Shown here one piece after another: positions 1-52,500 of a stretch of 64,000 nt of DNA. Below the pieces are notes generated by a model. That model was not told where the DNA came from. It made no database searches and saw only the letters and a list, made by a program, of their open reading frames with translations. Both the position numbers and the translations under genes were made by a program. Numbering within the stretch: position 1 is the first letter of the stretch; each line of letters starts with the position of its first letter. Source of the stretch: Macrostomum lignano (Eukaryota); assembly GCA_002269645.1 (NCBI GenBank), contig NIVC01000069.1, positions 1 to 64,000 of the forward strand, in the 5' to 3' direction.

Positions 1-440
1 GATCCAGGAGCTGCAGTAGATCCAGGAGCTGCGGTTGAGCCAGGAGCTGCAGTGGATCCAGGAGCGGCAGTGGATCCAGGAGCGGCGGTTGAGCCAGGAG
101 CTGCAGTGGATCCAGGAGCTGCGGTTGAGTCCAGGAGCTGCAGTGGATCCAGGAGCTGCGGTTGAGCCAGGAGCTGCAGTGGATCCAGGAGCTGGCAGTG
201 GATCCAGGAGCTGCGGTTGAGTCAGGAGCTGCAGTGGATCCAGGAGCTGCGGTTGAGCCAGGAGCAGCAGTGGATTCAGGAGCGGTGGTTGAGCCAGGAG
301 CTGCAGTGGATCCAGGAGCTGCAGTGGATTCAGAGAGCGGCGGTTGAGCCAGGAGCTGCAGTGGATCCAGGAGCGGCGAGTTGAGCCAGGAGCTGCAGTG
401 GATTCAGGAGCGGCGGTTGAGCCAGGAGCTGCAGTGGATC
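1..440 (-). repeat. Coding tandem repeat C, 18-bp unit (STAAPG)
   Basis: Minus strand reads TCAACCGCAGCTCCTGGA/TCCACTGCAGCTCCTGG repeated; runs off the window start. Confidence 0.9.
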
Positions 441-3400
441 AGGAGTCTCTGTCGATACTGGAGCTGCTGGGATCCAGAGCTTCTGTCGATACGCGGAGCT
501 GCTGGAGATCCAGGAGTTTCTGTCGATACCGAAGCTGCTGGGGATCCAGGAGTTTCTGTCGATACTGGAGCTGCTGGGGATCCAGGAGTTTCTGTCGATA
601 CCGGAGCTGCTGGGGATCCAGGAGTTTCTGTCGATACTGAGCTGCTGGGGATCCAGGAGTTTCTGTCGATACTGGAGCTGTTGGGGATCCAGGAGTTTCT
701 GTCGATACTGGAGCTGCTGGGGATCCAGGAGTTTCTGTCGATACTGGAGCTGCTGGGGATCCAGGAGTTTCTGTCGATACCGAAGCTGCTGGGGATCCAG
801 GAGTTTCAGTCGATACTGGAGCTGCTGGGGATCCAGGAGTTTCTGTCGATACCGAAGCTGCTGGGGATCCAGGAGCTTCTGTCGATACCGGAGCTGCTGG
901 AGATCCAGGAGTTTCTGTCGATACCGGAGCTGCTGAGGATCCAGGAGTTTCTGTCGAGCCAATATCGGCTGTTGATGCTGATGAAATTTCTGTTGCTCTT
1001 GGAGCTTCTGTAGAGCTGAGCTCTGCAGTCGTGCCAGGAGCGACTGTCGGCCCACTGTGGTTATTGTGTTACATGTGAAATTGGCACCAATGTTTTCCAT
1101 GCATGTCTCATCGGTGGAGCAGCTGGTAGAACTGCACTCCTGGGTGCAGAGGTAACCAGGATATGAATTGTTGGAGTCGCTTCTATAACCGAAGTTGCAG
1201 GTGCAGAGGGTTGAAACGTTTGTAGAGCTGTTGTCGCAAGAGGCATAAATGGAACAGCTGGTGTTGGAGCACAGGCTGGGCACTAAAACAGGCAATGTTA
1301 TGCAGAAATATCGAGTGATCCTATTTTAGTAGGTTCGAATATAGAAAACTTCACAAATTTTCATACTGAGATCCACTTACCTGCCGAGGATACATTGCTT
1401 ACGGTAAAGTTGGAGAATGATTCGTTCGATGATGCCAGATTCGAAATGCCAGACTCGATATCAGAAGAAATTGCCTCTGTTTCGATTGTGTCTACCTGTG
1501 GCCCGCTAATTTTGTCGTCGAACTCAGTGATAACAGATCCTGGTCCAAGGCTGATCAGTATCAGCGTGTGCCTTGCGTTGGCAAATGCTGGGTTGCTTGA
1601 GCGACGAAATACTGCCAACATCTGTAAGTGAGCATTTAAAAATGATAAAAAAGAAACAAAAACAACTTTATACTTTATACGCTCGTATTCTTAGTTTTAT
1701 TAGTTAAAATAAGCGTTTAACTTACAAACTGTACGAATGCAATCCAGAAATTCTGCGCGGCAGGGCTGTTGTTGTCTCTCATGTCCTCATCGTAGTCTTT
1801 CTGCACGACGACCTTTGGTCGAACAATCTTTGCCGCTATAATAGAAGAAAAAATGTTTTTTTCAGCAATGCAACACAGAAAATTGTATCAAGAGGCTAGA
1901 AAAAGCACATACGTTCTTCACAACGATCTCCTCCCCTATTAACAGGGCATTGGCAGGTACGCTCATTGTTGACGATCGAACAAACACCGTCATTTTTGCA
2001 ATAGCCAACTAAACACGTTGTTGCAGCTGTTGTTGGCGCAACTGTCGTCAATGCCGCTGGTGATGTAGATGAAGTTGAAGGCTCGGACGGGGCAGGTCCG
2101 CTCGATGGAGGAGAAGTTGGAATTTCAGTCGATACCGGAGCTGCTGGAGATCTAGGAGTTTCTGTCGATACCGGAGCTGCTGGGGATCCAGGAGTTTCTG
2201 TCGATACCGGAGCTTCTGGGGATCCAGGAGTTTCTGTCGATACCGGAGCTTCTGGGGATCCAGGAGTTTCAGTCGATACCGGAGCTGCTGGAGATCCAGG
2301 AGTTTCTGTCGATACCGGAGCTGCTGGGGATCCAGGAGTTTCTGTCGATACCGAAGCTGCTGGGGATCCAGGAGTTTCTGTCGATACCGAAGCTGCTGGG
2401 GATCCAGGAGTTTCAGTCGATACTGGAGCTGCTGGGGATCCAGGAGTTTCAGTCGATACTGAGCTGCTGGGGATCCAGGAGTTTCTGTCGATACTGGAGC
2501 TGCTGGGGATCCAGGAGCTTCTGTCGATACCGAAGCTGCTGGGGATCCAGGAGTTTCAGTCGATACTGGAGCTGCTGGGGATCCAGGAGTTTCTGTCGAT
2601 ACTGAAGCTGCTGGGGATCCAGGAGTTTCAGTTGATACTGGAGCTGCTGGGGATCCAGGAGTTTCTGTCGATACTGGAGCTGCTGGGGATCCAGGAGTTT
2701 CTGTCGATACCGGAGCTTCTGGGGATCCAGGAGTTTCGGTCGATACTGGAGCTGCTGGGGATCCAGGAGTTTCTGTCGATACCGGAGCTGCTGGGGATCC
2801 AGGAGTTTCTGTCGATACTGGAGCTGCTGGGGATCCAGGAGTTTCTGTCGATACCGAAGCTGCTGGGGATCTAGGAGTTTCAGTCGATACCGGAGCTTCT
2901 GGGGATCCAGGAGTTTCGGTCGATACTGCAGCTGCTGGGGATCCAGGAGTTTCTGTCGATACCGGAGCTTCTGGGGATCCAGGAGTTTCTGTCGATACCG
3001 GAGCTTCTGGCGATCCAGGAGTTTCTGTCGATACCGAAGCTGCTGGGGATCCAGGAGTTTCTGTCGATACTGGAGCTGCTGGGGATCCAGGAGTTTCAGT
3101 CGATACTGGAGCTGCTGGGGATCCAGGAGTTTCAGTCGATACTGGAGCTGCTGGGGATCCAGGAGTTTCTGTCGATACTGAAGCTGCTGGGGATCCAGGA
3201 GTTTCAGTCGATACTGGAGCTGCTGGGGATCCAGGAGTTTCTGTCGATACTGAAGCTGCTGGGGATCCAGGAGTTTCAGTCGATACTGGAGCTTCTGGGG
3301 ATCCAAGAGTTTCTGTCGATACCGAAGATGCTGGGGATCCAGGAGTTTCTGTCGATACCGAAGCTGCTGGGATCCAGGAGTTTCTGTCGATACCGAAGCT

Positions 3401-6400
3401 GCTGGGGATCCAGGAGTTTCTGTCGATACCGGAGCTGCTGGGGATCCAGGAGTTTCTGTCGATACTGGAGCTGCTGGGGATCCAGGAGTTTCTGTCGATA
3501 CCGAAGCTGCTGGGGATCCAGGAGTTTCGGTCGATACTGGAGCTGCTGGGGATCCAGGAGTTTCTGTCGATACCGGAGCTTCTGGGGATCCAGGAGTTTC
3601 TGTCGATACCGGAGCTTCTGGCGATCCAGGAGTTTCTGTCGATACCGGAGCTGCTGGAGATCCAGGAGTTTCTGTCGATACCGAAGATGCTGGGGATCCA
3701 GGAGTTTCTGTCGATACCGAAGCTGCTGGGGATCCAGGAGTTTCTGTCGATACCGGAGCTGCTGGGGATCCAGGAGTTTCTGTCGATACCGGAGCTGCTG
3801 GGGATCCAGGAGTTTCTGTCGATACCGAAGCTGCTGGGGATCCAGGAGCTTCTGTCGATACCGAAGCTGCTGGGGATCCAGGAGCTTCTGTCGATACCGG
3901 AGCTGCTGGAGATCCAGGAGTTTCTGTCGATACCGGAGCTGCTGAGGATTCAGGAGTTTCTGTCGAGCCAATATCGGCTGTTGATGCTGATGAAATTTCT
4001 GTTGCTCTTGGAGCTTCTGTAGAGCTGAGCTCTGCAGTCGTGCCAGGAGCGACTGTCGGGCCCACTGTGGTTATTGTGTTACATGTGAAATTGGCACCAA
4101 TGTTTTCCATGCATGTCTCATCGGTGGAGCAGCTGGTAGAACTGCACTCCTGGGTGCAGAGGTAACCAGGATATGAATTGTTGGAGTCGCTTCTATAACC
4201 GAAGTTGCAGGTGCAGAGGGTTGAAACGTTTGTAGAGCTGTTGTCGCAAGAGGCATAAATGGAACAGCTGGTGTTGGAGCACAGGCTGGGCACTAAAACA
4301 GGCAATGTTATGCAGAAATATCGAGTGATCCTATTTTAGTAGGTTCGGATAAAGAAAACTTCACAAATTTTCACACTGAGATCCACTTACCTGCCGAGGA
4401 TACATTGCTTACGGTAAAGTTGGAGAATGATTCGTTCGATGATGCCAGATTCGAAATGCCAGACTCGATATCAGAAGAAATTGCCTCTGTTTCGATTGTG
4501 TCTACCTGTGGCCCGCTAATTTTGTCGTCGAACTCAGTGATAACAGATCCTGGTCCAAGGCTGATCAGTATCAGCGTGTGCCTTGCGTTGGCAAATGCTG
4601 GGTTGCTTGAGCGACGAAATACTGCCAGCATCTGTAGTTGATCATTTAAAAATGATAAAAAAGAAACAAAGGCAACTTTGTACTTTGTACACTCGTATTC
4701 TTAGTTTCATTAGTTAAAATAAGCGTTTAACTTACAAATCGTACGAATGCTAACCAGAAATTCTGCGCGGCAGGGCTGTTGTTGTCTCTCATGTCCTCAT
4801 CGTAGTCTTTCTGCACGACGACCTTTGGTCGAACAATCTTTGCCCCTATAATAGGAGAAAAAATGTTTTTTTCAGCAATGCAACATAGATAATTGTATCA
4901 AGAGGCTAGAAAAAACACATACGTTCTTCACAATGATCTCCTCCCCAATTAACAGGGCATTGGCAGGTACGCTCATTGTTGACGATCGAACAAACACCGT
5001 CATTTTTGCAATAGCCAACTAAACACGTTGTTGCAGCTGTTGTTGGCGCAACTGTCGTCAATGCCGCTGGTGATGTAGATGAAGCAGTCCGCTCGATGGA
5101 GGCGCACTCGGAGCATCACTTGGAGCAGGTCCGCTCGATGGAGGTACACTCGGAGCGTCACTTGAAGCAGGTCCGCTTGATGGAGTTGCACTCGGAGCAT
5201 CACTTGGAGCAGGTCCGCTCGATGGAGGTGCACTGGGAGCGTCGGATGGAGCAGGTCCGCTCGATGGAGGTGCACTGGGAGCGTCGGACGGGGCAGGTCC
5301 GCTCGATGGAGGCGCACTCGGAGCGTCAGATGGAGCACGTCCGCTCGATGGAGGCGCACTCGGAACGTCGGACGGTGCAGGTCCGCTCAATGTAGCTGCG
5401 CTCGGAGCGTCACTTGGAGCAGGTCCGCTTGATGGAGGCGCACTCGGAGCGTCACTTGAAGCAGGTCCGCTTGATGGAGTTTCACTCGGAGCATCACTTG
5501 GAGCAGGTCCGCTCGATGGAGGTGCACTGGGAGCGTCGGACGGGGCAGGTCCTCTCAATGTAGCTGCGCTCGGAGCGTCACTTGGAGCAGGTCCGCTCGA
5601 TGGAGGTGCACTGGGAGCGTCGGATGGAGCAGGTCCGCTCGATGGAGGCGCACTCGGAACGTCGGACGGGGCAGGTCCGCTCAATGTAGCTGCGCTCGGA
5701 GCGTCGGACGGGGCAGGTCCGCTCGATGGAGGCGCACTCGGAGCGTCACTTGAAGCAGGTCCGCTTGATGGAGGCGCACTCGGAGCATCACTCGGAGCAG
5801 GTCCGCTCGATGGAGGCGCACTCGGAGCGTCGGACGGGGCAGGTCCGCTCGATGGAGGCGCACTCGGAGCGTCTGACGCGGCAGGTCCACTCGATGGAAG
5901 CGCACTCGGAGCGTCAGATGGAGCAGGTCCGCTCGATGGAGGCGCACTCGGAACGTCGGAAGGGGCAGGTCCGCTCAATGTAGCTGCGCTTGGAGCGTCG
6001 GACGGGGCAGGTCCGCTCGATGGAGGCGCACTCGGAGCGTCTGACGCGGCAGGTCCACTCGATGGAAGCGCACTCGGAGCGTCAGATGGAGCAGGTCCGC
6101 TCGATGGAGGCGCACTCGGAACGTCGGAAGGGGCAGGTCCGCTCAATGTAGCTGCGCTTGGAGCGTCGGACGGGGCAGGTCCGCTCGATGGAGGCGCACT
6201 CGGAGCGTCACTTGGAGCAGGTCCGCTTGATGGAGTTGCACTGGAGCGTCGGATGGAGCAGGTCCGCTCGATGGAGATGCACTCGGAGCGTCGGATGGAG
6301 CAGGTCCGCTCGATGGAGGCGCACTCGGAGCATCACTTGGAGCAGGTCCGCTTGATGGAGTTGCACTCGAAGCATCACTTGGAGCAGGTCCGCTCGATGG

Positions 6401-7772
6401 AGGTGCACTGGGAGCGTCGGATGGAGCAGGTCCGCTCGATGGAGGTGCACTGGGAGCGTCGGATGGAGCAGGTCCGCTCGATGGAGGTGCACTGGGAGCG
6501 TCGGACGGGGCAGGTCCGCTCGATGGAGGCGCACTCGGAGCATCACTTGGAGCAGGTCCGCTCGATGGAGGCGCACTCGGAGCATCACTTGAGCAGGTCC
6601 GCTCGATGGAGGTACACTCGGAGCATCACTTGGAGCAGGTCCGCTCGATGGAGGTGCACTGGGAGCGTCGGATGGAGCAGGTCCGCTCGATGGAGGTGCA
6701 CTGGGAGCGTCGGACGGGGCAGGTCCGCTCGATGGAGGTGCACTGGGAGCGTCGGATGGAGCAGATCCGCTCGATGGAGGTGCACTGGGAGCGTCGGACG
6801 GGGCAGGTCCGCTCGATGGAGGCGCACTCGGAGCATCACTTGGAGCAGGTCCGCTCGATGGAGGCGCACTCGGAGCATCACTTGGAGCAGGTCCGCTCGA
6901 TGGAGGTACACTCGGAGCATCACTTGGAGCAGGTCCGCTTGATGGAGTTGCACTCGAAGCATCACTTGGAGCAGGTCCGCTCGATGGAGGTGCACTGGGA
7001 GCGTCGGATGGAGCAGGTCCGCTCGATGGAGGTGCACTGGGAGCGTCGGATGGAGCAGGTCCGCTCGATGGAGGTGCACTGGGAGCGTCGGACGGGGCAG
7101 GTCCGCTTGATGGAGGCGCACTCGGAGCGTCCGATGGAGCAGGTCCGCTCGATGGAGGCGCACTCGGAACGTCGGACGGGGCAGGTCCGCTCAATGTAGC
7201 TGCGCTCGGAGCGTCACTTGGAGCAGGTCCGCTCGATGGAGGCGCACTCGGAGCGTCACTTGAAGCAGGTCCGCTCGATGGAGGCGCACTCGGAGCGTCA
7301 CTTGAAGCAGGTCCGCTTGATGGAGTTGCACTCGGAGCATCACTTGGAGCAGGTCCGCTCGATGGAGGTGCACTGGGAGCGTCGGATGGAGCAGGTCCGC
7401 TCGATGGAGGTGCACTGGGAGCGTCGGACGGGGCAGGTCCGCTCGATGGAGGCGCACTCGGAGCGTCAGATGGAGCAGGTGCAGTAGGAGCCTCAGATGG
7501 GACTGGTAGAGTTGGAGCTTCGGAAGTGGCAGGTTCACTAGATGGAGCTACCGCTTCAGCTGTTGTGGACTGATTTGGAATTTCAGTCGTGCTTGCTGAG
7601 AGTTCTACAAAGATGTTGATGATATTTGAGTTTTGAGACTCCTATGTATTAAAGATACATTTAAACTTAAGCCGTCAAAAATTTGGCAGTCAAACTTCAA
7701 TGGTTTAATAAACTTACTGCAGACGAGTAATGCTGCAATCAGCAAATGCAGGGCGTAGTGGCAGCGCCACAT
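1..7772 (-). CDS. Mucin-like glycoprotein: signal peptide-PTS(A)-EGF-SEA-EGF-PTS(B)-EGF-SEA-EGF-PTS(B/C)..., 3' end outside the window. Exons 7772-7718, 7604-4923, 4845-4736, 4631-4391, 4292-1913, 1835-1726, 1621-1381, 1282-<1
   Basis: Exon 1 encodes MWRCHYALHLLIAALLVC (signal-like) and ends at a GTAAGT donor. All junctions are GT-AG with matching phases. EGF motif CLVGYCKNDGVCSIVNNERTCQCPVNWGGDHC; SEA-type segments YDEDMRDNNSPAAQNF and LISLGPGSVITEF; second EGF CSNTSCSIYASC...CTCNFGY...C. Single-base frameshifts occur inside the repeat arrays (about 6590, 6240, 5085, 3370, 2460, 640, 470). Confidence 0.85.
445..955 (-). repeat. Coding tandem repeat B, 36-bp unit (PVSTETPGSPAA), short array
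   Basis: Plus strand GGAGTTTCTGTCGATACCGGAGCTGCTGGGGATCCA repeated about 14 times. Confidence 0.9.
2130..3965 (-). repeat. Coding tandem repeat B, 36-bp unit (PVSTETPGSPAA), long array
   Basis: About 50 copies of the same 36-bp unit between the two EGF-SEA-EGF cassettes. Confidence 0.92.
5085..7490 (-). repeat. Coding tandem repeat A, 42-bp unit (PPSSGPAPSDAPSA)
   Basis: About 57 copies of GAGCAGGTCCGCTCGATGGAGGCGCACTCGGAGCGTC... in mucin exon 2. Confidence 0.92.
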
Positions 7773-17874: not shown

Positions 17875-20800
17875 TCACAGATTTGGCCCCCCGTTCACTT
17901 GCATCTTGTACTTGTAGGTGAGCTCGGTCGATGTCAGCCGGCCACTCTGCAACGAGAACGCCGCACCGCCTGAGTCCTTGGCCGGATCCTTGGCTAGCGG
18001 CGACAGCCAGTTGACCACCGAGTCAAGGAACGGCACCTGGCGAAGGGCGCCGGCCTCAGCTAGGCGACGCTGTTGCTCCCGTCTGAGCGCCGATTCCGCC
18101 TCGGCAATTCGTCGACGAACTAGGGCGTCTAGACGGCGCGCGCACAGTCTGGCGTCGGCTGCGGCGGCGCCGGCTTCGAGAACGCGGCGAACTAAGGATG
18201 GCAGGTCGGCGTCCTCCGGGACAAGGCCGCAGCGCAGGCAGCCAGACTCTGGGCACCAGGCAAATCCGGCGTCCATGGAGCGGACGGCGGCGGCGAGGTC
18301 GCGATTCACGGCGTCCTCTTCCTCGGCGGAGATGACGTCTGGCGTTGAGTCAGCGGCGACGAATGGCTGGAATCAGGGGGAGGAGAGAAGCATGGGGTCA
18401 TTAGAAGCAGACCGGAAGTAAGGGTTGTAGCTGGTCCTAGTGACCGGAAGTAAGTGTTGTAGCTTGCACTAGTGACCGGAAGTAAGTGTTGTAGCTTGCA
18501 CTAGTGACCGGTAATAAGGGATGTAACTTGCCCTAGTGACCGGTAATAAGGGATGTAAGTTGCCCTAGTGACCAGAAGTAAGGGTTGTAGCTTGCACTAG
18601 TGACCGGAAGTAAGGGCCGTAAGATAGCTTGAACTAGCAACCGGAAGTAGGGTTAGCCTGCCTTAGTAACCGGAAGTATGGTTGTAGCTTGCCCTAGTGA
18701 CGGAACTAAGGGTTGCAGCTTGAACTAGCTACCGGAAGTAAGCTAGGGTTGCAGCTTGAACAAGTCGCCGGAAGTAAGGATTGAACCTAGAATTATGACA
18801 GTAAATTTTAATTTAAATTAAGATACACTTTAACGCTCAATATATTATTTAGCAAACTGCAACTATTGGTAGTAGCATAGTGAGAGAAATAAACTTAAAA
18901 AAAATTAAACCAACCTTTTCCTCGCCGACATCCTCAACAGTCGGGCCGCCAGTTGCCGTCTCAGCCTCCTCCTGCTGCTTCTCCTCTTCATCTTCATCGC
19001 CGAAATCCTCCGGCCTAAGCCGATAGCGCAGGCCGCCAAGGCCAGGCCAGTCGGGCATGTCAACGTACATCAATCGGCCTTCGCTAGCCTCGGCCAGTTT
19101 TATAAACTCCGATCGAGCTCGCCTAGTAGAGTCGAGCAGGCGAAGCGAACTGCTCAGAGCTTCGGCCAGGCCGTCAACGTGATCTGGCAGCCAGTCGGCG
19201 CACGACTCGATCGGGCAGAACCGGATGCAGTACCTGGAGGCGTTCGATTCACTATCTCCGTTACGTAGGCGAATTTTGATGACGGACAGAGACTGCAGAT
19301 GAGGCAGCGCTGAGCGGAGGCTGTCCACTAGCCAGCGATTCTCTCCTAGTAGACGGCGTTGGGCCAGTTGCTGCTGCAAGCGCTGAAAGAATCCATTGAT
19401 TGATTGGGCGCTCATTGTAGCTTGAGTGAGCAGATACTTTAGAAGTGATTATCCCGTGTATCTCCAGAGAATATTATCCAGAGTATTTCTATGGGAGATT
19501 ATCCCGGGTATTTCTGGGGAGATTATCAAAGGTATATCAAGGGAAGATTATCCCAGGTATTTCTAGGAGAAATTATCTCGGGCATTTCTGAAGGGAGATT
19601 ATCTCGGGTATTTCTAGAGGAGATTATCCCGGGTATTTCTAGGGTAGATTATCCCGGGTATTTCTAGGGTAGATTATCCCGGGTATTTCTAGAGGAGATT
19701 ATCCCGGGTATTTCTAGGGTAGATTATCCCGGGTATTTCTAGGGTAGATTATCTCGGGTATTTCTAGAGGAGATTATATCGGGTATTTCTGGGGGAGATT
19801 ATCTTGAGTACCTCCAGTGAGATTATCCTGGGTATCTTTAAGGGAGATTATCCTGGATATCTCTTGGGGAGATTAACCTGGGTCTCTCTAGTGAGATTAT
19901 CCTGGTCAAAATACTCGCACAATTTTCTTCACCTCTTCCTGAGCGTCTTCAGAATCATCATGGGCAGGTTTAGACGAGTTCTCCGCAGCTTCTGCAGCTT
20001 CCTCATCAGTTTTATCTTTAGCCTGCTCATGATGAGCATCGCCGCTATTTCGCCGGTCACTGCCGATGCGCGCGTAGGGCGCCCTGGCCTGGTTTGTACT
20101 TTTAGCTGCGCTAATGGCCTTATTAGCCACCTTATCCTCATTAGCACCGCTATCAATAGCCAGTTCGCAGCGCTGCTCGGGCGGACAATACCGGAACAGC
20201 AGAACAGTTGGCGCGAATTCAAAATCAATCAGAAAGCTCAGCATCTGGCCTAGCAGATTGCTATTGGCTTTGATATCTGCTCGGTCATTGTCGGATAGAG
20301 ACTGCGGCTCTATCAGTTCAATGTCTGGCGCTGTTTTTAGCGCCGTTAAAGTGGCTTTGACCGTCTGTTCGACATTGCGGACTCGAGCTTGGATATTGTC
20401 GTAGCCGATCGCTTGCAGGACGAACCAGAGCGGCAGGAGAGACATTGGCTGGTAGGATAGGCAGCGAATATCGGCCGGGGCTGTCAGCGGCTGCTGCTTC
20501 CTCTGCTGCCCGAATTGCTGCTCAGTTTGCTCTTCTTCTTCTTCTTCTTCTTCGCCTTTTGGCTTGTCGTTGTTGCTTGGCGTCGCAGCTTCTGTGGTTC
20601 TTTTGTCACTATGCTTATTGGCTTTGGTAGCGGAGGCTTCGTCTTCATCTGTTGTCTGCAAGTTATTCAAGTTAGTTTGTGTTGTCTCAATATATATTTA
20701 ACTTCCTATCTGCGCTACTATAGGAAATTAGCTATATTTCTAACCTGTATTGCAATATTTAGGTTATTCTAATTACGAATTATTGTACGTATAATTAGGG

Positions 20801-23800
20801 TATCTCAATTTCTTTAAATCATGCAGGCGGTTGCTACCCAGATCATTCACAAATCAGCCAAGGCTTACTCACTCAGTTGCTACCCAGATCATTCACAAAT
20901 CAGTCAGGGCTACTCACCCAGTTGCTACCCAGATCATTCACAAATCAGTCACGGCTACTCACCCAGTTGCTACCCAGATCATTCACAAATCAGTCAGGGA
21001 GCTCAGGCGGTAGCTACTCTTTCCTCACCTTGTGCAGCAGAGAGCCGTCCCTAGCAATCCGCAGCACAGTGGCGCTGACCAGACCCGGATAGCCCAGCCA
21101 CTGGTCGAACTCCATCAGACAGGAGGAGACAGCCGAGCTGCCGCCTAGCAACGGTCTCAAACTAGTTGGTACAGAGTTTAGCGCCAGCTGGGACAGCTTC
21201 GAGCCCTGAACGTGCAGCCAGACCCGGTGCTGCCGACAGATGGCGGCCACGCGGCCCAGCCGATCATAGGAGCCGGTCAGGCGGGTGCCGCACATGGCCT
21301 GCACGAATAGCGGAGTTCGACCTTCGCCAGAGTCCGACTCGACTAAGCGTTGCAATTCGGAATGATCGATGCAGTCGGGGTTGTGCGAACTGCCTGGCAA
21401 CTGCAGATGGGGTTTTGTTGGTTTTGGGGAATTTGGTTAGCAACACTCACTGGCACTGAACAGTAACAGGTGCCTAAACAGAGATTCGAAGTGGCGCCAA
21501 GTAGGGATTTCTATGAATCTAGGAGTGCCAAATAGGGATTTCTAAGGGTGCCAAATAGGGATTTCTAAGGATAGCAAATAGGGATTTCTAAGGATAGCAA
21601 ATAGGGATTTCTAAGGATAGCAAATAGGGATTTCTAAGGATAGCAAATAGGGATTTCTAAGGATAGCAAATAGGGATTTCTATGAATCTAGGAGTGCCAA
21701 ATAGGGATTTCTAAGGGTGCCAAATATGGATTTCTAAGGATAGCAAATAGGGATTTCTAAGGATAGCAAATAGGGATTTCTAAGGGTGCCAAATAGGGAT
21801 TTCTAAGGATAGCAAATGGGGATTTCTATGATTCTAGGAGTGCCAAATAGGGATTTCTAAGGATAGCAAATAGGGATTTCTAAGGGTGCCAAATAGGGAT
21901 TTCTAAGGATAGCAAATAGGGATTTCTAAGGGTGCCAAATAGGGATTTCTAAGGATAGCAAATAGGGATTTCTAAGGATAGCAAATAGGGATTTCTAAGG
22001 ATAGCAAATAGGGATTTCTAAGGATAGCAAATAGGGATTTCTAAGGGTGCCAAATAGGGATTTCTAAGGATAGCAAATAGGGATTTCTAAAGATAGCAAA
22101 TAGGGATTTCTAAAGATAGCAAATAGGGATTTCTAAGGATAGCAAATAGGGATTTCTATGAATCTAGGAGTGCCAAATAGGGATTTCTAAGGATACCAAA
22201 TGGGGATTTCTAAGGATAGCAAATAGGGATTTCTAAGGATAGCAAATAGGGATTTCTAAGGATAGCAAATAGGGATTTCTAAGGATAGCAAATAGGGATT
22301 TCTAAGGATACCAAATGGGGATTTCTAAGGATAGCAAATAGGGATTTCTAAGGGTGCCAAATAGGGATTTTTAAGGATAGCAAATAGGGATTTCTAAGGG
22401 TGCCAAATAGGGATTTCTAAGGGTGCCAAATAGGGATTTCTAAGGGTGCCAAATAGGGATTTCTAAAGATAGCAAATAGGGATTTCTAAAGATAGCAAAT
22501 AGGGATTTCTAAGGATAGCAAATAGGGATTTCTATGAATCTAGGAGTGCCAAATAGGGATTTCTAAGGATACCAAATGGGGATTTCTAAGGATAGCAAAT
22601 AGGGATTTCTAAGGATAGCAAATAGGGATTTCTAAGGATAGCAAATAGGGATTTCTAAGGATAGCAAATAGGGATTTCTAAGGATACCAAATGGGGATTT
22701 CTAAGGATAGCAAATAGGGATTTCTAAGGGTGCCAAATAGGGATTTTTAAGGATAGCAAATAGGGATTTCTAAGGGTGCCAAATAGGGATTTCTAAGGGT
22801 GCCAAATAGGGATTTCTAAGGGTGCCAAATAGGGATTTATACGGGGCGCCGAGATAGGATCAAGGGGGGAGCTAATAACAAAAAAGGTTGTTCTAAGACG
22901 CTCACAATACGAAAGCAAGTCTTCGGCAAGCACAATTGGCAAGACAAATAATCCATCAGACTTGTTGAAGTAGTCGGATGCAGATAGATCACTGGCGGCT
23001 TGCTGAACAGGCACTCGAATCCGGTCTCCAGCAGGTTGGGAAATCTTGACAGCAGTGCTCGGCGACAGGCCAGCACGAGGCTGTCCCGCTTGTCCATGTG
23101 GAAGGCCAGCTCGCCGCCTCCGAGGCGCCACACTTTCGGTATCCATTCCGATAGGTCAGCCTGGGTGCGGCGAGGTTCAAGCGAAAGAAAATTTATAGCG
23201 ACTGCCTCAATAGCCCTACTGATAGTAGCATTAGTGACATTACTGAATCAACTTGAGATAAAGCAATAAAAATAGTTTATAAAAAGCGTTGCATGACGTG
23301 TAGCTTGAGCTGTAGATTTTGTAGATCAGTGCTACGAGACTAGCAGATTCTAGAGATCAACTCTATGAACCTACAGATTCGGTAGACCAATCCCACGAGC
23401 TTACAGAATCTGTGGAACAATCCTAAAAGCCTACAGCTTACAAGCTTATACAGATCCTGTAGATAAATCCTACAAGCTTACAGAATCTGTAGATCAATCC
23501 TACAAGCTTACAAAATCCGTAGATCAATACAAGCTTATACAGATCCTGTAGATCAATCCTACAAGCTTACACAGAATCTGTAGAACAATCCTACAAGCTT
23601 ACAGATTCTGTAGAACAATAGTACAAGCTTACAGAATCTGTAGATCAATCCTACAAGCTTACAGAATCTGTAGAACAATCCTACAAAAGTAGAGATATGC
23701 TAGCTTAACGTGTAGTCTTTAGATGCAATTAGATATCTCTTGTTTCGCAGCTAAATTAAGAAGACCCCAATGAATGGAATGGCAATCACTAAGAACCAAT

Positions 23801-32542: not shown

Positions 32543-34888
32543 ATGCTTTCATTCAGCACAATGAATAAGCAGTTTAACTCGAGAACGAACTCGGTTAGCG
32601 GAGGCGCTGACTGCCTCTGGTTTGACGCCGGCACATCCGAGTTACTCACAGCGCGACTGCTTGAAGACGACGTTGAAGGAATGATCAGCCTTGCTGCAAC
32701 TGCCAGCGGACCAGAATGCTGCTTGGAGGATCGGCTGAGCTGGAGGCTGGAGCACAGTGCAGCAGCTTTATCAGAGCTCAGACCACCGGCATTTGCATGT
32801 CGGCTGCCGCAGCTGTGCGTCGTTCTGTCCAGTCGGCGGGTTCTTCGCTACCTGGCGCTGACTCATCCCCAGCTCTTGCTGCTAACTGACAGGGACTCCG
32901 GGTCGAACCTGCTGCACTGCATGGCCGAGGCCAGCTGCTCGGGAACTGCCGGCTACGAAGCTTTTCAAGCGGAGGCTTTTGAACTCTTACGTCATGTTTT
33001 TTGGGCGCCAGCCGGAGAAGATCCATGGTCTGATAGGTACATGCTACATTAGTTTTCGTTTTGCTCATGCTCACAAGTTCCTAAGTAATCATGCACTACA
33101 CTCGTAGAGACTGGGAGGAGAGCGTTAAATGAATATATGGTGTGCTTACGTCGCGGAGGCAACTCATTAGAGGTAGACTCATTAGAGGTAGACTCATCAG
33201 AAAGACGATAAATTCTTCCATGATGCACACTGTACCTGTTGACTCCTACCTTAAATTTACAACTAGTGACTGAAATGCAGCAGTTAGCAACCGATCACTG
33301 CAGTCAATGAATCTCTTTATTAACGCACGAAACCTCCAGCCCACAGGTAAACCTGCTTCATCGACTGTGTCGAATAGAAAATGCCCAAGGCCTGAGACCG
33401 TTGGAATTTTCCATGCTCATAGGCGCCTATTTCAGCGTTCGACTCATCCTTGGCGTTGAAGGGTACCTGCTAGTTAAGCAAGGTGCTCACGGAATTCGCG
33501 TGCGAAGTGCGTATGACTTTGCTGAGTACGATCTGATGAACGGAGAGCGACGAGACAAGAACCCTCTGCTGATGCTGACGCGGATGTCGACGGAGCAAGC
33601 GGACCAGTACGCACAGTCCGGCTTGCAGGATGTGCCAGTGATGAAGAATTGGATCGATTTGACCAATAAAGACATGAAATGCACTTTGACGCTGCGTTTA
33701 GTAGCTTTGAGCATACTGGCCTCTTCCTTCACTCCGTTCAGCAACCGCTTCGACCTCATTGTGTCCATGGCAGCCATCGGCTATGAGCTTGAGACGGGCT
33801 TTGAGCGGTACACTGATCTGATCAAACTAGCTTTGAGTAGCTCAAACAGCAGCGATGGGTCAATGACTGAAGGCCTGAACTACAGCATCACGGATCTAGA
33901 AAAGACTGTCCGAGTCAACTGCTCACCAGCGTCTCTGATCCACTACCTGACTGACAAGTCCAACCCGAACAATACCGACACGCTGTTCACGTCGCCACTC
34001 TGGGGTGTCCCAATTCAGAGGACAACGATTCTCAAAAACTGGTCAATTTCGCTGTTCATCCTGAGCCCAGTTCTAGTCATTCAACTCGCCGTTCTATTGC
34101 TTAACTGCTTCAAGGAGCTGCAATTTGCGCGGCGCTTCAGCAAATGGACACCGACGCACCGACGTCCGAAAGAGTATCTGGTACAGTCGCACTACTTCTT
34201 GACTGCTTACGCGCTCAGCTTCATGACAGGAATTATCTTCATCATTGCCTCAATGACTCTGGAGAGATCCATTGACTGCACAGACTATGTGCTCGGCCGT
34301 AGGGGCCCAAGAAACTTGCAGCTGACTGTGGCAGCCAATGTGTCCGAGTGCTCCGCAGTTCTGTACATATTCTTTACGCTATTTAGCGCACTTGAAACCT
34401 ACGAGAGCGGATGCCGAAGCATGTCTTTTCTGTGCATCAGCTTCCGACGAGCCATTTCCAGATTTGTCGGCGTTCTGCCGCTCTTCATTCTGTGGACGTA
34501 CATCGTGTTCGGCAGCCTGTTCTACATGACAGACGTTCTCGGCAAGGAGTTCGCGAAGCCGTACTCGGTGTTCTATTCACCGCTGCGCTTGCTGCTGAAC
34601 ATTGCCAGTCCGGCGCAGGACTTCACCAGCGTGGTACTGCACACACTCTTCATTCTGGTGGTTGGCATCAACGTACAGAACTTCATCATTGCCATCATAT
34701 CGAACTCGTTCGACGAATCGGTCAACAAGTTCGATATGATTTACACGCTGAGTTTGCTGAATAATTCGCTGCACACCTGGCAGTTGTATGGATGGCTCAC
34801 TCGGATGTCGAGGCGCGCATGCGGCAGCAGAGAAAAGAAAAATGAGACTGGCTGCCTTGTCAGAGTGTGGAGCCTGAAGCCTCGATAG
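32543..34888 (+). CDS. Divergent TRPV-like cation channel, about 680 aa; join(32543-33036,33340-34888)
   Basis: Ankyrin-like GSNLLHCMA and ENAQGLRPLEFSMLIG, YDFAEYD linker, six hydrophobic segments, pore helix FYSPLRLLLNIASP, S6 LFILVVGINVQNFIIAIISNSF. The phase-2 GT-AG intron restores the frame. AATAAA at 35148. Confidence 0.75.
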
Positions 34889-37308: not shown

Positions 37309-40300
37309 TCACAATGGCGTTTCAACTGACAATTCGCCAACAGAGCCAATGAAAGACTGACTGCCTTGTTGGTGTGGTGTCCGCCTCCTGATGGGCGAGG
37401 TGGAACTCCCACCTGGCTGCTGCTGGCGCGACGAGCTGGATCGACCACTGAGCCTGCGCTGATGATAGTGCTGAGTCACAGCGGCTGTTGATGAGCCGCC
37501 ACTGATGCTGATGCGCTTTTTGGCGGCTGAATGATGAATTATGCGCGGTTTTGAGGGTGCTGAGCGGCTCTGGTGATTATTATTTGCCTGCTGCTGCGGC
37601 TGCTGCTGCTGCGTGTGTGATGACCTAATCGGAGGGGTAAACAAACACAAGATGATTTATGCATGTAGACTTTGATTTGATAAAGTGCAAAAGTTTTATG
37701 GAAACAAGTTCAGTTGCTATGGCGACGGGTTTAGTTGCTATGGTGACGGTTCACAACGAAGCTCGATCTCACCTGCTATTCCGCTGCCGTCTGCCGCTAT
37801 CCCGCCGATGGGCGGGTCGCCAGCTGACTGACATGCTGGCCGCGGCGGAGACGGCTGCGGTGGGGCTGGCGGCGGGCGCCACCCTCGCTTCGTCTTTGGC
37901 GACGGGACGGCGCACCTGGGCTGGAAGCGACTCTTCGACTTCGATCTCCCAGGCGGTGGACTGCCGAGGCGAAGGTACCGGGTCACGACGCTGAAGCGAG
38001 CGACGGAGCACGTCTTGAGCGTTCAGCTGAGACGCCTGACGTGGCGCTGGCGCCGGCGGGAGCGGCTGCTGAGGCGCTCGATCGGTGCTGTCGGCACTGC
38101 CATTGACACTGACTGGCTGCCGAGGGGTGGCGCGCATCGGTGGGCGAGTCGGCAGCTCGTCTGGCAGACTTCCGGGTTCGGGAAGCAACCGCTGCGACTT
38201 CAGCTCAGACAGGGTGTCGCGTAAGCACTGCATCACCTGGGATATCCAGATAGTAGGGTTGGAATGAGAACGGTGAGATTAAACGGTGAGATTATTCTTT
38301 AGGAGTGAAGGTCAATAGGTTGGATGAAATGGTGATGAGGTGATTACGTAGGGTGAGAATCGAGACGAGGTAGGGTGAGATTGGAGATTAGGTAGGGTGA
38401 GATTGGAGATGAGATGAGGTAGGGTGAGATTGGAGATGAGATGAGGTAGGGTGAGAATGTAGATTTTTAGGTTGAGAATGGAGACGAGGTAGAGCGAGAT
38501 TCGAAATGAGTTTAGCATTAGGATGGAGATGATTAGGGTGAGAATAGAGATAGCGGAGGGTTCAGATAGAGGTGAGGCAGGGTAAGAGGGGAGCTGACAA
38601 CTAAATTTTCTAGTTTAACACACAGTCGCCATGATAGCAAAGCTAAAAACCTTAGCTCGCACAATGAACTCTACCCTAACAGATTCTGCATCAAACTGCG
38701 TCATTAGTGAATAAACAAGAGGTCTGCAGTAACCGCGATTTAACCCAGCCTGATCATAGTTCTCATAACAGCATGAGAGAAAGATGACAGACAGACAAAA
38801 CTATATGCGCAATTGTAGATACAACCTGTAAGTAAACCAAAATGCGCCAAAGTAAACTAAGGATACGAACCATAAAAATGCTTAACAACACACTAGTCAA
38901 AGACGAGACCGACATCAATTAATCTTTGAAAGCATGAGATTTGGAAACTATATTGTCAAGATACTCAAAAATTTTACTAAGCGTCTACAACACCGAGAAA
39001 TGTGATTGCATGCATTAATTCACAACCCGAACAAGTCCTCATAAACCAAATTAGCCAAATCCAATAAATTTATATGACCAAATCCCATAAACACACCTGA
39101 CCAAATCCCATAAACACACCTGACCAAATCCTATAAACACACCTGATCGATTCACATAAACACACCTGACCAAACCCATAAACACACCTGATCAATTCCC
39201 ATAAACACACCTGATCAATTCCCATAAGCACACCTGATCAAATCCCATTACCACACTTGATCAAATCCCATTAGCACACCTGATCAAATCCCTTAAACAC
39301 ACCTGATCAAATCCCATTAACACACACGGCCAAATCCATTAGCACACCTGATCAAATCCCACAAACACACCTGACCAAATCCCATAAACACACCTGACCA
39401 AATCCCATAAACACACCTGACCAAATCCTATAAACACACCTGATCGATTCACATAAACACACCTGACCAAACCCATAAACACACCTGATCAATTCCCATA
39501 AACACACCTGATCAATTCCCATAAACACACCTGATCAATTCCCATAAGCACACCTGATCAAATCCCATTACCACACCTGATCAAATCCCATTACCACACC
39601 TGATCAAATCCCATTAGCACACCTGATCAAATCCCTTAAACACACCTGATCAAATCCCATTAACACACACGGCCAAATCCATTAGCACACCTGATCAAAT
39701 CCCACAAACACACCTGATCAAATACTATAAACACGGAATCAAATCTCAAACACACCTGATCAGTTCTCATAAACACACCTGATCAAATCCCATAAACACA
39801 TCTGATCAAATCCCATAAACACACCTGATCAAATCCCATAAACACACCTGATCAATTCCCATAAACACACCTGATCAAATCCCATAAACACACCTGATCA
39901 AATCCCTTAAACACACCTGATCAAATCCCATTAACACAATTGATCAATTCCCATAAACACACCTGACCAAATCCCATAAACACACCTGATCAATTCCCAT
40001 AAACACACCTGACCAAATCCCATAAAATGATCGTCTCACCTGATCCTCAGTATAACTGAAATCCTTCTGCAGTCCAGCTCCCAGGAAGGCCAGAAACTCT
40101 TCATCCGACTTCATCTTCATCAGCCTCTTAGAGTGCAACCGCATGACGGCAACCGCCATAGCAACCAGGACCTGCTCCCCCAGTGCCACAAATATGTCCC
40201 ACAACCGCACAGTGATGGGAAATGGCATGCAGTCGAGAAACGCCTGCATGAACCACCGAACAGCGTAAGCGGTGACCGGCACCAAGTGCTTCTCGTGAAT

Positions 40301-41936
40301 CAGCCTGTCGAGTCTGGGCATGAGATTCTGCAGACAGGTCCTGTACTGCTCGATGTAGCGCAGAAGCTTGGGAAAGTTTGGAATAAAGAAGCCGTGAAGA
40401 CCGTGGCGCGGCCCCGTGAACAGCTGGGTCAGCGCCAAGAAGGCTTCTTCTTCGTCGTTGAAGTACAGCAGAAGGAAGGCTGCCAGCTGACTCATGCCCT
40501 ACGGTACGGCGGGTAGATTTGTCATCGGTTTACAGCATTTTAGCTGAGCTGTCACCCTCCACCACAATGCACCGATACTTCAGGGCCCGCAATTGTCACC
40601 CCTCCACCACAATCCCCTGATACTTCAGGGCCCGCAGCTGTCACCCCTCCACCACAATCCCCTGATACTTCAGGGCCCGCAGCTGTCACCCCTCCACCAC
40701 AATCCCCTGATACTTCAAGGCCCGCAATTGTCACCCCTCCACCACAATCCACTGATTTTTCAGGGTCCGCAGTTGTCACCCTCCACCACAATCCACCGAT
40801 ACTTCAAGGCCCGGAGTTGTCACCCTCCACCACAATCCCCCGATACTTCAGGGCCCGCAGTTGTCACCCCTCCACCACAATCCACCGATACTTCAGGGCC
40901 CGCAATTGTCACCCTCCACCACAATCTTCTGATACTTCAGGGCCCGCAGCTGTCACCCTCCACCACAATCTTCTGATACTTCAGGGCCCGCAGCTGTCAC
41001 CCCTCCACCACAATCCACCGATACTTCAGGGCTCGCATCTGTCACCCCTCCACCACAATCCACCGATACTTCAGGGCTCGCATCTGTCATCCCTCCACAA
41101 CAATCCACCGATACTTCAGGGCTCGCATCTGTCACCCCTCCACCACAATCCACCGAATCGTCACTGCTCAAACCTTGTAGCTCTCTAGCAGCACTAACCT
41201 GGCAATAGCCAACATCCGTGTTGTACATGCTATAGGCCACCAGAACGTTAAACAACACTCTTTGCCTAGCATTATATCGAACTCGATAGAACTCAGTAAA
41301 CCGATAAGTCCTATTCACGTCCAAATCAATCTGGTGCACATCTGCTGAATGCTTCCTGGCGTACTCCCTGATGGCCGGATAGCCCCATTGGCAGGACCGC
41401 CTGGCTTCATCGATTGCCAACAATTCGTACCAGACTGGATATCGGAACTTCTCAGGCACACCTTTGTACAGGCGGTTTAAAAACTTGGCGCTAAAATCCA
41501 GAGCTCGACGACTAGCCGTCTCGTCTCTGCCGCCATTGTCAGTTTCGGCGGCAACCCGGTGCCAGTTGGCGAAGCGGCTGCCGCTGGCCTGGCCAGATTG
41601 GTTTGCTGGCCGCAGCATCCGCTGCCACTTCGGCTCGCGGCGCAGGTCGGCTCGGCGAATTCGCGCCTCGGCGAGGGACAGAGCGGCGGGCACGCCGCCT
41701 GAGGCAGCCGGGTGGTAGAAGCCAAAGTGATCGATCTGGCTGTCCGGAGGCACCGGGTCAGCTTCGGTGATGCCAGAAATCCCGCCTGATGCTTTGCCAT
41801 CGTAGCGAGCAACAATGGCGGCGCGCTCAGCGTCTTGTCGGCGATTCTCGCGACTGTCCTCGTCTTCGTTGTTATTGTCCAGCTTGGAGTGGTGAACTTC
41901 GATGCGGGGCCTGACTGGTTGGAGCTTAGCTGACAT
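37309..41936 (-). CDS. USP6NL: USP6 N-terminal-like (RN-tre) TBC-domain Rab GAP, 658 aa. Exons 41936-41199, 40498-40040, 38236-37773, 37624-37309
   Basis: AERAAIVARYD, DHFGFYH, LYKGVP, IDLDVNRT (Arg finger), YNTDVGYCQ|GMSQ (Gln finger), GLHGFFIPNFPKLLR, PFPITVRLWDIF. GT-AG junctions with consistent phases 0, 0, 2. Confidence 0.92.
38260..38600. repeat. Degenerate (GAGAT/GGGTGAGA)-rich repeat in USP6NL intron 2
   Basis: Recurrent GTAGGGTGAGATTGGAGATGAG-like units. Confidence 0.7.
39075..40026. repeat. 23-bp minisatellite (CACACCTGATCAAATCCCATAAA), about 40 copies, in USP6NL intron 2
   Basis: Direct reading; internal block duplication of about 297 bp (39131 vs 39428). Confidence 0.95.
40550..41155. 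repeat. 45-bp minisatellite, about 13 copies, in USP6NL intron 1
   Basis: TCACCCCTCCACCACAATCC...GATACTTCAGGGCCCGCAGCTG units. Confidence 0.92.
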
Positions 41937-49562: not shown

Positions 49563-52500
49563 ATGGAGATTCAAGTTAAGAAAAGTCGAAAAGTGAAAGG
49601 CGTTCGCCAGAAACTGAAGCTGTTTCGGGCTAGCGATCCACTCAAATCTGTCATCATGTGGGGCATTAACTATTCGGTGAGTAAAAGTATGTATATTATG
49701 ACTGACGCGATGTACTGTAGTGTTGACCTTCAAATGACCCCTTATCAACCTGACGCAATGTACGGTAGTGTTGACCTTCAAATGACCCCTTATCAACCTA
49801 ACGCAATGTACTGTAGTGTGACCTTCAAATGACCCCTTATCAACCTGAGCACAGATGGACCAGTTGGACCACGTCAACAAGCGAACAATGCTGCTGCCAG
49901 ATGACTTCAAAAGTAATTTAAAAGTCAAGGTGGACAATCATCTGTTTAATAAGTGAGTAGTTTTAGCAAATTAGTTTCATATAAAAGCCTGCAATATGTG
50001 TATTGTGAATGATCATTTATTTTAAACCAATTGTCCTTTGAGTTATGTAGCTGTGGGCCACACCCTTGGCGTATGTTATGCGCTAAAATGCCTTAGTAAA
50101 AGCATCTCTTCTTTTTTCTATGTCTCTTTAACAATTTGGCTTCCTATTGCTGCTTTTAGTATCTGAAAAAATGGTTCGCTATCACAATCAGGCGTGTTGT
50201 TCTTTGACAGTCCCTGATTGCTTCTGCATAGGTATCTTCAATAGGTGCTTCGTTTCATTTTTTGAATCTGTTTTAGGCGTACTGTTTTTCGGGCTTTAAT
50301 CTTCTACTTTTGTGTTTAGCATCTGCTTACTGAGATTTTCTGATCTCTGCTTCTGTGTTTCAAATCTCTGCTTCTGTGAGTTTCACATCTCTGCTTCTGA
50401 GAGTTTCACATCTCTGCTTCTGTGAGTTTCACATCTCTGCTTGTGTTTCACATCTCTGCTTCTGTGTTTCACATCTCTGCTTCTGTGAGTTTCACATCTC
50501 TGCTTCTGTGTTTCACATCTCTGCTTCTGTGTTTCACATCTCTGCTTCTGTGAGTTTCACATCTCTGCTTCTGTGTTTCACATCTCTGCTTCTGTGTTTC
50601 ACATCTCTGCTTCTGTGAGTTTCACATCTCTGCTTGTGTTTCACATCTCTGCTTCTGTGTTTCACATCTCTGCTTCTGTGAGTTTCACATCTCTGCTTCT
50701 GTGTTTCACATCTCTGCTTCTGTGTTTCACATCTCTGCTTCTGTGAGTTTCACATCTCTGCTTCTGTGTTTCACATCTCTGCTTCTGTGTTTCACATCTC
50801 TGCTTCTGTGTTTCACATCTCTGCTTCTGTGTTTCACATCTCTGCTTCTGTGTTTCACATCTCTGCTTCTGTGTGTTTTACATCTCTGCTTCTGTGTTTC
50901 ACATCTCTGCTTCTGTGTTTCACATCTCTGCTTCTGTGTGTTTCACATCTCTGCTTCTGTGAGTTTCACATCTCTGCTTCTGTGTGTTTCACATCTCTGC
51001 TTCTGTGAGTTTCACATCTCTGCTTCTGTGTTTCACATCTCTGCTTCTGTGTTTCACATCTCTGCTTCTGTGTTTCACATCTCTGCTTCTGTGAGTTTCA
51101 CATCTCTGCTTCTGTGTGTTTCACATCTCTGCTTCTGTGAGTTTCACACCTCTGCTTCTGTGTTTCACATCTCTGCTTCTGTGTTTCACATATCTGCTTC
51201 TGTGAGTTTCACATCTCTGCTTCTGTGTGTTTCACATCTCTGTTTTTCTAGCTTTTTCAATTCCAAGTTAATGCAATTAGTTAACAAGAAACTCAGAAAT
51301 CTCATAAACGAACCCCCTTATGTGCCACAAAACCCGTGTCAGAGACAGCATGCCGAGCAAGTTCAAGTTCAAGGAGTACTGCCCCCTGGTGTTTGCCGAT
51401 TTGCGATCAAAATTCGGCATTGAACGCACAGAATACCTGGACAGCTTTATTAAACGCCAACCTCAGTACGACGCTTCTCAGGGCCGGTCCGGCAGCAAGT
51501 TTCTGTGCACTTATAATCGGCACTATGTAATTAAAACTATTGGTAGCGAAGAAGTTGAGCAGATGCACCATATTCTACAGGTGAGGGACTTGAAGGGTTT
51601 TAATTTAGAGACCAATTGTCGGTCAGCTGATGAGATCAAAGAGGCCAATTGTCGGTCAGCTGATAAGATCAAAGAGGCCAATTGTCGGTCAGCTGATGAG
51701 ATCAAAGAGGCCAATTGTCGGTCAGCTGATAAGATCAAAGAGGCCAATTGTCGGTCAGCTGATGAGATCAAAGAGGCCAATTATCTATCGGTTAACTGAT
51801 GAGATCAAAGAGGCCAATTATCCATCAGCTGATGAGATCAAAGGGGCCAATTATCTATCGGTTAACTGATGAGATCAAAGAGGCCAATTGTCTATCGGTT
51901 AACTGATGAGATCAAAGAGGCCAATTGTCTATCGGTCGGCTGATGAGATCAAAGAGGCCAATTATCTATCGGTCAGCTGATGAGATCAAAGAGGCCAATT
52001 ATCTATCGGTCAGCTGATGAGATCAAAGAGGCCAATTATCTATCGGTCGGCTGATGAGATCAAAGGGGCCAATTGTCTATCGGTTAACTGATGAGATCAA
52101 AGAGGCCAATTATCCATCAGCTGATGAGATCAAAGGGGCCAATTATCTATCGGTTAACTGATGAGATCAAAGAGGCCAATTATCCATCAGCTGATGAGAT
52201 CAAAGGGGCCAATTATCTATCGGTCGGCTGATGAGATCAAAGGGGCCAATTGTCTATCGGTTAACTGATGAGATCAAAGAGGCCAATTGTCTATCGGTTA
52301 ACTGATGAGATCAAAGAGGCCAATTATCCATCAGCTGATGAGATCAAAGGGGCCAATTATCTATCGGTTAACTGATGAGATCAAAGAGGCCAATTATCCA
52401 TCAGCTGATGAGATCAAAGGGGCCAATTATCTATCGGTCGGCTGATTAGATTCAAGTGATTTACCAGTTATCAGATATATATCCAGTTAACATTAGTAAA

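Follow-up and report, generated by a model that had tools for sequence, protein, structure and literature searches.

The stretch of DNA analysed here (the window) comprises 64,000 nucleotides of the free-living flatworm Macrostomum lignano (contig NIVC01000069.1 of assembly GCA_002269645.1, positions 1 to 64,000 of the forward strand), and its left end, positions 1-7772, carries on the minus strand the start of a GT-AG spliced mucin gene. A first-pass annotation of these letters had described a signal peptide, at least two EGF-SEA-EGF cassettes separated by proline-, threonine- and serine-rich (PTS) arrays of 14-, 12- and 6-aa units, and a gene running past the window. All these elements are present on the minus strand, in the order signal-peptide-like N-terminus, 14-aa array, cassette 1, 12-aa array, cassette 2 and, finally, 12-aa and then 6-aa units that run off the window edge. 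The cassette is 100% identical to the NCBI entry 'hypothetical protein BOX15_Mlig021149g2, partial' (P0001), which identifies the gene as Mlig021149g2, and 97% identical to UniProt A0A1I8HM67 (P0002). We consider that positions 1-7772 probably represent the 5' part of a gene for a giant, possibly self-cleaving, cell-surface mucin of the SEA type, duplicated from a single-cassette ancestor.

Exons, tandem arrays and reading frame

Within the window the gene extends over at least 2,370 codons in 8 exons, all on the minus strand, and its frame is still open at base 1. Exon 1 (7718-7772, 55 nt) begins with the ATG at 7772, encodes the signal-peptide-like sequence MWRCHYALHLLIAALLVC and ends in phase 1 at a GTAAGT donor; the peptide shows a hydrophobic core followed by KLSAS|T and is a putative signal peptide. 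Intron 1 (7605-7717, GT...AG) ends at the acceptor TTTGTAG|AA (7605/7604), which restores the PTS frame, and exon 2 (4923-7604), compatible in phase with exon 1, contains an S/T/P-rich N-terminal lead-in, the 14-aa array and the first EGF domain (EGF1) of cassette 1. The N-terminal part of the first SEA domain (beta1-alpha1) is encoded by exon 3 (4736-4845) and its C-terminal part (beta2, GPG|SVITEF, beta3, alpha2, beta4) by exon 4 (4391-4631), whereas the long exon 5 (1913-4292) comprises EGF2 and a truncated EGF3 of cassette 1, a linker, the 12-aa array and EGF1 of cassette 2. The same arrangement is repeated in exon 6 (1726-1835, N-terminal part of the second SEA domain, offset by -3010 from cassette 1), exon 7 (1381-1621, its C-terminal part) and exon 8 (1-1282, open at the window edge), the last of which holds EGF2 and the EGF3 stub of cassette 2 (1282-1059), a linker and the 12-aa and 6-aa units. 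Our splice junctions, derived by hand, are exactly those of the NCBI model P0001, and an intronless contig from a relative, which we read as a transcript, crosses junctions homologous to those of the window gene, thus supporting the splicing of transcripts in this family.

PTS array 1 (5077-7480) consists of 57.3 copies of a 42-nt (14-aa) unit, most commonly PSSGPAPSDAPSAP (TRF score 3135), and PTS array 2 (2119-3966) of 51.4 copies of a 36-nt (12-aa) unit, most commonly VSTETPGSPAAP (TRF score 3143). Proline, serine and threonine together account for 61% of the residues before cassette 1 and 57% of those between the cassettes. About 14 copies of 12-aa units follow cassette 2 (445-957), after which an array of 21-24 copies of the hexapeptide STAAPG (18-nt unit, 1-445) runs off base 1. 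The 12-aa and 6-aa units are related, as positions 1-957 were called by TRF as an 18/36-nt array with an 18-nt periodicity throughout 1-947. Mucins have been operationally defined by Lang et al. as proteins with a PTS domain plus an SEA or a VWD domain (PMC1552070), and long P/S/T-rich tandem repeats are found here as arrays of 57, 51 and at least 35 units. These arrays would be densely O-glycosylated and form extended hydrated rods.

As assembled, the gene is interrupted by 1-bp frameshifts at about 6591, 6242, 5086, 3368, 2458 and 1058 and by at least seven more in 1-650, that is, by at least 13 frame switches in 7.7 kb, which might be taken as the real frameshifts of a decaying pseudogene. 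Window positions 15538-2372 match the end of contig NIVC01000068.1 (locus L001, from the Mlig_3_7 assembly) at 98.5% identity, and this contig end therefore represents an independent assembly of the same locus. It has one extra base at all five of the window frameshift sites that it covers (6591, 6242, 5086, 3368 and 2458) and, conversely, is one base short (private deletions) at ten sites at which the window stays in frame. All the events are single-base, no in-frame stop occurs in 2,170 codons once six placeholder bases are added, and between the two cassettes exons are six-fold less diverged than introns. The frameshifts are assembly errors and the reading frame is intact once they are discounted; given that the indels of the two assemblies are mutually private and that the frame lacks stops, a pseudogene is very unlikely, to the point of being hardly credible. 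The two assemblies are also colinear through array 1, whose length is equal in both and thus reproducible. In window positions 1-650 the density of single-base indels is some ten-fold above that of the rest of the gene (7 frame switches in 650 nt), a pattern similar to that of L001 in its error-rich tail; a contig end, located within the hexapeptide array, probably lies at the start of the window or close to it. More generally, long-read frameshifts in tandem arrays can make an intact giant gene resemble a pseudogene.

The EGF-SEA-EGF cassettes

Two non-repetitive blocks of about 1.1 kb lie between the arrays, each with three GT-AG introns of 77, 104 and 98 nt in compatible phases. The spliced block encodes 228 aa, namely an EGF with six Cys, a domain of some 120 aa that bears the motif GPGSVITEF, another six-Cys EGF and a stub with four Cys; each cassette has 16 Cys and 9 N-glycosylation sequons. 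EGF1 (4923-5031 in cassette 1, with the spacing C-x4-C-x5-C-x8-C-x-C-x8-C; 2021-1913, within exon 5, in cassette 2) is followed in cassette 1 by the SEA domain (4845-4736 plus 4631-4391, split over exons 3 and 4) and by EGF2 with the stub (4069-4292). The stub, a truncated third EGF present in each cassette, corresponds to the N-terminal two-thirds of the EGF3 of transmembrane (TM)-anchored paralogues: in the family alignment A2 it equals the first four Cys of EGF3 in the relatives and stops where these go on with CxCxxGYxGxxC.

Pfam searches returned matches to both domain families below their gathering thresholds, and the domain calls consequently rest on structure prediction and family profiles. 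The SEA model PF01390 scored 18.9 and 20.1 bits on the two cassettes (cutoff 26.4, E about 1e-3), 19.9 bits on the isolated SEA segment of the window and 26.7 bits on the whole related protein P0003; among isolated SEA segments of the family, seven of nine matched it at E<=0.1 (best 5e-6), and no other Pfam family recurred. Alignments A2 to A4 were built from relatives. A single-sequence AlphaFold2 run on the whole 228-aa cassette gave no usable model (pLDDT 34.7), and a run on the eight-sequence alignment A4, restricted to the SEA domain, yielded a model (pLDDT 71.8, pTM 0.69) with the beta-alpha-beta-beta-alpha-beta order expected for SEA. When this model was compared with the PDB by Foldseek, the top seven matches were all SEA domains, among them TMPRSS11D, TMPRSS6 (TM-score 0.69, root-mean-square deviation 2.8 A) and four MUC16 entries, with probabilities of 0.85-1.0 and a sharp drop after them. 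At the sequence level, the SEA-only profile found as its best PDB sequences the SEA domains 2e7v and 8vis, weakly (E 0.13-0.8). These lines converge, with moderate strength, on a predicted SEA fold for the middle domain.

For the flanking domains, Pfam EGF scored 16.1 bits on the cassette (cutoff 21.5) and EGF_3 scored 14 bits. The six-Cys EGF pattern is present in EGF1 and EGF2; EGF1 matched mouse EGF in phmmer (E 1e-3), and in the search of the PDB with the whole-cassette family profile EGF matches swamped the list, with Notch EGF repeats at E about 3e-13 overall and down to about 2e-9 in the EGF1 region. We accept the EGF-SEA-EGF assignment on this converging, moderate evidence rather than on one strong score. 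Among solved structures, the ErbB ligands EGF and TGF-alpha, rather than EGF repeats of the matrix type, gave the best sequence matches to EGF1 (5031-4923 and 2021-1913; E about 1e-3). Engagement of ErbB2 has been proposed for the EGF domains of vertebrate membrane mucins.

The motif GPG|SVITEF, singled out by the first-pass annotation as a potential self-cleavage site, indeed occurs in both cassettes (4530-4556, with the scissile Gly-Ser between 4548 and 4547, and 1546-1520, within exon 7). SEA domains with the sequence G|S[V/I]VV cleave themselves through strain arising during folding in the endoplasmic reticulum; the two resulting chains hold together non-covalently and can be unfolded or pulled apart by force (PMC13643018, PMC9578598). 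The window motif reads G|SVIT, with Thr instead of the canonical Val at the fourth residue (PMC13643018), and the nine sequons per cassette would also fit a structural role, so that the modules might remain uncleaved and, like most SEA repeats of MUC16, form folded, N-glycosylated units that space the PTS rods or act between them as interaction domains. We regard this as quite possible while leaning against it: Gly-Ser is invariant in alignments A2 and A3, and no family member has lost it or the two aliphatic residues after it, whereas identity elsewhere is only 18-35%, and in the SEA model GPG|S is placed in the beta2-beta3 hairpin, the site of strain-driven cleavage. Judged from the conservation of the motif and from its Thr, the chances that the SEA modules cleave themselves into subunits appear about evenly balanced.

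Going downstream, cassette 2 follows cassette 1 at an offset of exactly 3,010 bp, and the repeat unit of this length contains, besides a PTS array of about 600 aa, two and a half EGFs and three introns. The two copies are 97-98% identical, introns included (the summary figure for the cassettes is 99%), and differ at 24 positions, 8 of 827 in exons (0.97%) versus 16 of 279 in introns (5.7%; Fisher p = 1.8e-5). Of the eight exonic changes seven are nonsynonymous, hardly any substitution having occurred at synonymous sites; the pattern is therefore explained no less well by recent duplication or gene conversion than by purifying selection. Such similarity invites the suspicion that cassette 2 is an assembly artefact produced by the tandem joining of a single-cassette gene's haplotypes or homeologous copies in a repeat-rich genome. 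M. lignano is a hidden polyploid whose assemblies are difficult (PMC10468722), errors abound at the window end, L001 breaks off inside array 2, and over their 3' 600 nt the cassettes are identical in exons. This explanation is nevertheless improbable, because the cassettes differ in their upstream arrays (14-aa vs 12-aa) and junction peptides as well as at the 24 positions, and because L001 runs from cassette 1 through the 12-aa array, its last bases entering the cassette-2-specific junction ...VSTEI-TSPPSSGPA-EPSTSS. The second assembly thus supports a module after array 2.

Relatives, probable membrane anchor and preferred reading

Word-indexed protein searches gave self-matches of M. lignano and few others, and the paralogues emerged from an exhaustive HMMER (phmmer) search of 1.8 billion representative proteins. 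Only a handful of its 38 matches at E<=1e-3 span the SEA domain as well as EGF1. The relatives identified as reaching beyond EGF1 are four M. lignano proteins, i.e. the gene models P0002 (A0A1I8HM67) and P0003 (A0A1I8GA25) and the paralogues P0004 (BOX15_Mlig000697g4) and P0016 (A0A1I8IR67), one brittle-star protein (P0013) and the intronless, transcript-like contig from sequencing runs mentioned above (P0006, L002/L003). P0004, P0016 and the contig share the layout PTS-EGF-SEA(xGSVx)-EGF-EGF-TM-cytoplasmic tail. In P0004, P0016 and the terminal module of P0003 the EGF-SEA-EGF core is 27-35% identical to that of the window and keeps the Gly-Ser. The Mlig000697g4 locus (L004), the one paralogue locus that was read, combines two PTS arrays (11 aa x 58 and 10 aa x 17) with a single cassette, whose three introns are placed as in the cassette of the window. 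The 11-aa array of this gene contains an assembly-type frameshift near position 8000, and directly upstream of the gene (L004 3223-6741) lies a retrotransposon pol-like open reading frame (ORF) of 1,172 aa, reverse transcriptase/integrase-like. The cytoplasmic tails of P0004, P0006, P0016 and P0003 have in common IPRA[RH]L, SFxYP[FY]KRYS and a C-terminal GRQYF/ENFY, motifs whose conservation hints at an intracellular partner that is likewise conserved. The brittle-star protein ends in a TM segment too, with a different tail.

Since the single-cassette paralogues carry the full PTS-EGF-SEA-EGF-EGF-TM-tail order, the simplest history of the window gene would be a tandem duplication of a 3,010-bp unit, [PTS array + EGF-SEA-EGF-EGF], with its breakpoint inside EGF3. 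How the protein ends must be judged from other gene models. P0003 joins an out-of-frame piece of 14-aa array and an SEA domain 100% identical to that of cassette 2 to a divergent SEA-EGF-EGF-TM-tail module, which suggests that, in another assembly, a TM-tail module lies downstream of a cassette. P0002 has 14-aa-type arrays, translated out of frame, on both sides of its cassette, and thus more cassette contexts exist than the two of the window. The two models together suggest that this polyploid genome contains additional cassettes or nearly identical copies of the gene.

Alternatively, the product might be secreted rather than anchored, a mucin in which SEA and PTS domains alternate and which lacks a TM end. 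A secreted Xenopus family of this kind is reported (Lang et al. 2007, as cited in PMC4948705), the window contains no TM segment, its internal cassettes lack the C-terminal third of EGF3 and all that follows it, and from the context of the P0002 cassette the gene or its copies may be long chains. A secreted product seems to us somewhat unlikely even so, given that a TM segment and a conserved tail form the C-terminus of the mucin-like relatives P0004, P0016 and P0006 as well as of the terminal module of P0003, that the brittle-star protein also ends in a TM segment, and that P0003 connects a cassette-2 SEA domain to such a module.

For the giant cell-surface mucin that we favour, the following course can be proposed. 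A single-cassette PTS-EGF-SEA-EGF-EGF-TM ancestor would have undergone tandem duplication of the 3,010-bp unit, the copies still being nearly identical. Each SEA module would cleave itself at G|S during folding and its halves would remain non-covalently associated, the mature protein being a chain of O-glycosylated rods joined by force-sensitive, disulfide-stabilised EGF-SEA-EGF nodes. It would probably end in the divergent SEA-EGF-EGF-TM-tail module and thus act as a cell-surface glycocalyx mucin shed under mechanical load. Several results speak against this proposal and temper our confidence in it. The Pfam scores of both domains lie below threshold; the structural model rests on eight sequences and has moderate confidence, with Foldseek E-values of 0.009-0.1; and the cleavage motif departs from the canonical one by its Thr. 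No TM segment or terminal module was found in the window, and the link to the terminal module comes from one automated, partly out-of-frame gene model (P0003) of another assembly. The low exon divergence between the cassettes may reflect gene conversion as much as constraint on the protein, and the last 650 bases, rich in errors, are covered by one assembly only. Finally, a literature search in which RNA-seq supplementary tables were covered in part found neither expression nor localisation data for the gene, and the search for its identifier found no mention of it. The protein may serve in mucus, glycocalyx or adhesion, as the first-pass annotation proposed. Identity with the M. lignano adhesive proteins Mlig-ap1 and Mlig-ap2 was considered and rejected, as both are vWD-C8-TIL proteins.

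Neighbouring sequence, known mucins and significance

Elsewhere in the window there are unrelated genes (RabGAP-TBC, PIP5K, PDXDC1-like) and numerous minisatellites, and no further mucin-like gene was found. A 45-nt array at 40547-41156 (13.7 copies), whose plus-strand reading is the PTS-like AVTPPPQSTDTSGPA, was examined as a second mucin piece and rejected, for it sits between two minus-strand RabGAP-TBC exons; lying between the ORFs 39944-40495 and 40953-41936, it is most simply an intronic minisatellite. Minisatellites are very dense over 9000-64000, with dozens of arrays of 20-46-nt units, and GC content there swings from 27% to 59%; examples are a 23-nt unit at 21529-22838 and 39075-40026 and a 20-nt unit at 59771-62254, and tetranucleotide tracts occur at 57256, 58525 and 63042. 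The neighbouring regions 51320-54107 (plus strand), 18849-19415 (minus strand) and 33401-34888 (plus strand) include PIP5K-like exons split by minisatellites of 32-37 nt, a PDXDC1-like exon and an ORF of 495 aa with the appearance of a multi-pass membrane protein and no Pfam match.

Among its relatives within M. lignano the window gene differs from Mlig000697g4 in having more than the single cassette of that locus, and from P0004, P0016 and the terminal module of P0003 in that the C-terminus of these consists of a complete EGF3 followed by a TM segment and a conserved tail (...SFxYPFKRYS...GRQYF); like the window gene, Mlig000697g4 carries more than one type of PTS array. In IMPG2 the order is SEA, mucin-like region, SEA-EGF-EGF-TM, with neither EGF before the SEA domains nor long perfect tandem arrays. 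This order would resemble [cassette]-PTS-[terminal SEA-EGF-EGF-TM], and the exhaustive HMMER search detected no sequence similarity to IMPG2. MUC16 (CA125), with repeat units of about 156 aa, is likewise a mucin with many tandem SEA modules, and its SEA domains are among the Foldseek matches of our model; its repeats are devoid of EGF and of long PTS arrays between the SEA domains, whereas the SEA domains of the window are flanked by EGF and separated by PTS spacers of about 600-850 aa of differing unit type. In 2006 MUC16 was referred to as the only mucin with multiple SEA domains (PMC1552070). The Xenopus family shares with the window gene the alternation of SEA modules and PTS domains in one polypeptide and differs from it in being vertebrate and reported as secreted, EGF flanks not being mentioned in the citing text, as far as consulted (PMC4948705). 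With these precedents of alternating SEA and PTS domains in MUC16 and in Xenopus, the layout is a variant rather than a new principle (PMC1552070, PMC4948705). The suggestion of the first-pass annotation that the multi-module mucin may be undescribed is supported for the gene and for its particular unit, as our literature search found no paper on either Mlig021149g2, a repeated PTS+EGF-SEA-EGF unit or any flatworm SEA-type mucin, and does not extend to the alternation of SEA and PTS domains as such.

The closest likeness in architecture is to MUC13, and to MUC3, MUC12 and MUC17, in which PTS tandem repeats precede EGF-SEA-EGF(-EGF) and the SEA domain contains G|S[V/I]xx (PMC1552070, PMC13643018). 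In the flatworm paralogues the likeness to MUC13 goes further, as a TM segment and then a cytoplasmic tail follow in the order seen there, and the window gene departs from MUC3, MUC12, MUC13 and MUC17 by repeating PTS+EGF-SEA-EGF at least twice, its internal cassettes having a truncated third EGF. The architecture common to the MUC13 type and the flatworm family could reflect either common ancestry or convergence. No vertebrate mucin was recognised among the matches of the exhaustive phmmer search, those limited to EGF1 being left unnamed, and a profile search beyond it added only a Xenopus 'CD97 antigen-like' protein and no link at the sequence level to a vertebrate mucin. According to the literature, SEA-type membrane mucins arose in vertebrates (PMC9578598). 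Our widest proposal, which we put forward tentatively and regard as unlikely, is that SEA-type membrane mucins of the PTS-EGF-SEA-EGF-EGF-TM order predate vertebrates and that the Macrostomum duplicate, a chain of self-cleaving EGF-SEA-EGF joints with differently glycosylated rods between them, would be a non-covalently concatenated, force-fusible polymer of the glycocalyx or mucus, able to break at several predetermined points.

A free-living flatworm thus has a small family of proteins with the PTS-EGF-SEA-EGF-EGF-TM order and a conserved Gly-Ser, one member of which iterates the module. If the architecture is homologous to that of vertebrate mucins, the origin of this mucin class would move back to early bilaterians; if it is convergent, an EGF-SEA-EGF joint beside a glycosylated rod would be a recurring solution. 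Several fuses in series in one protein would constitute a natural experiment for the idea of the SEA domain as a mechanical fuse, which could be tested in vivo in M. lignano, a transparent animal open to RNA interference and transgenesis.

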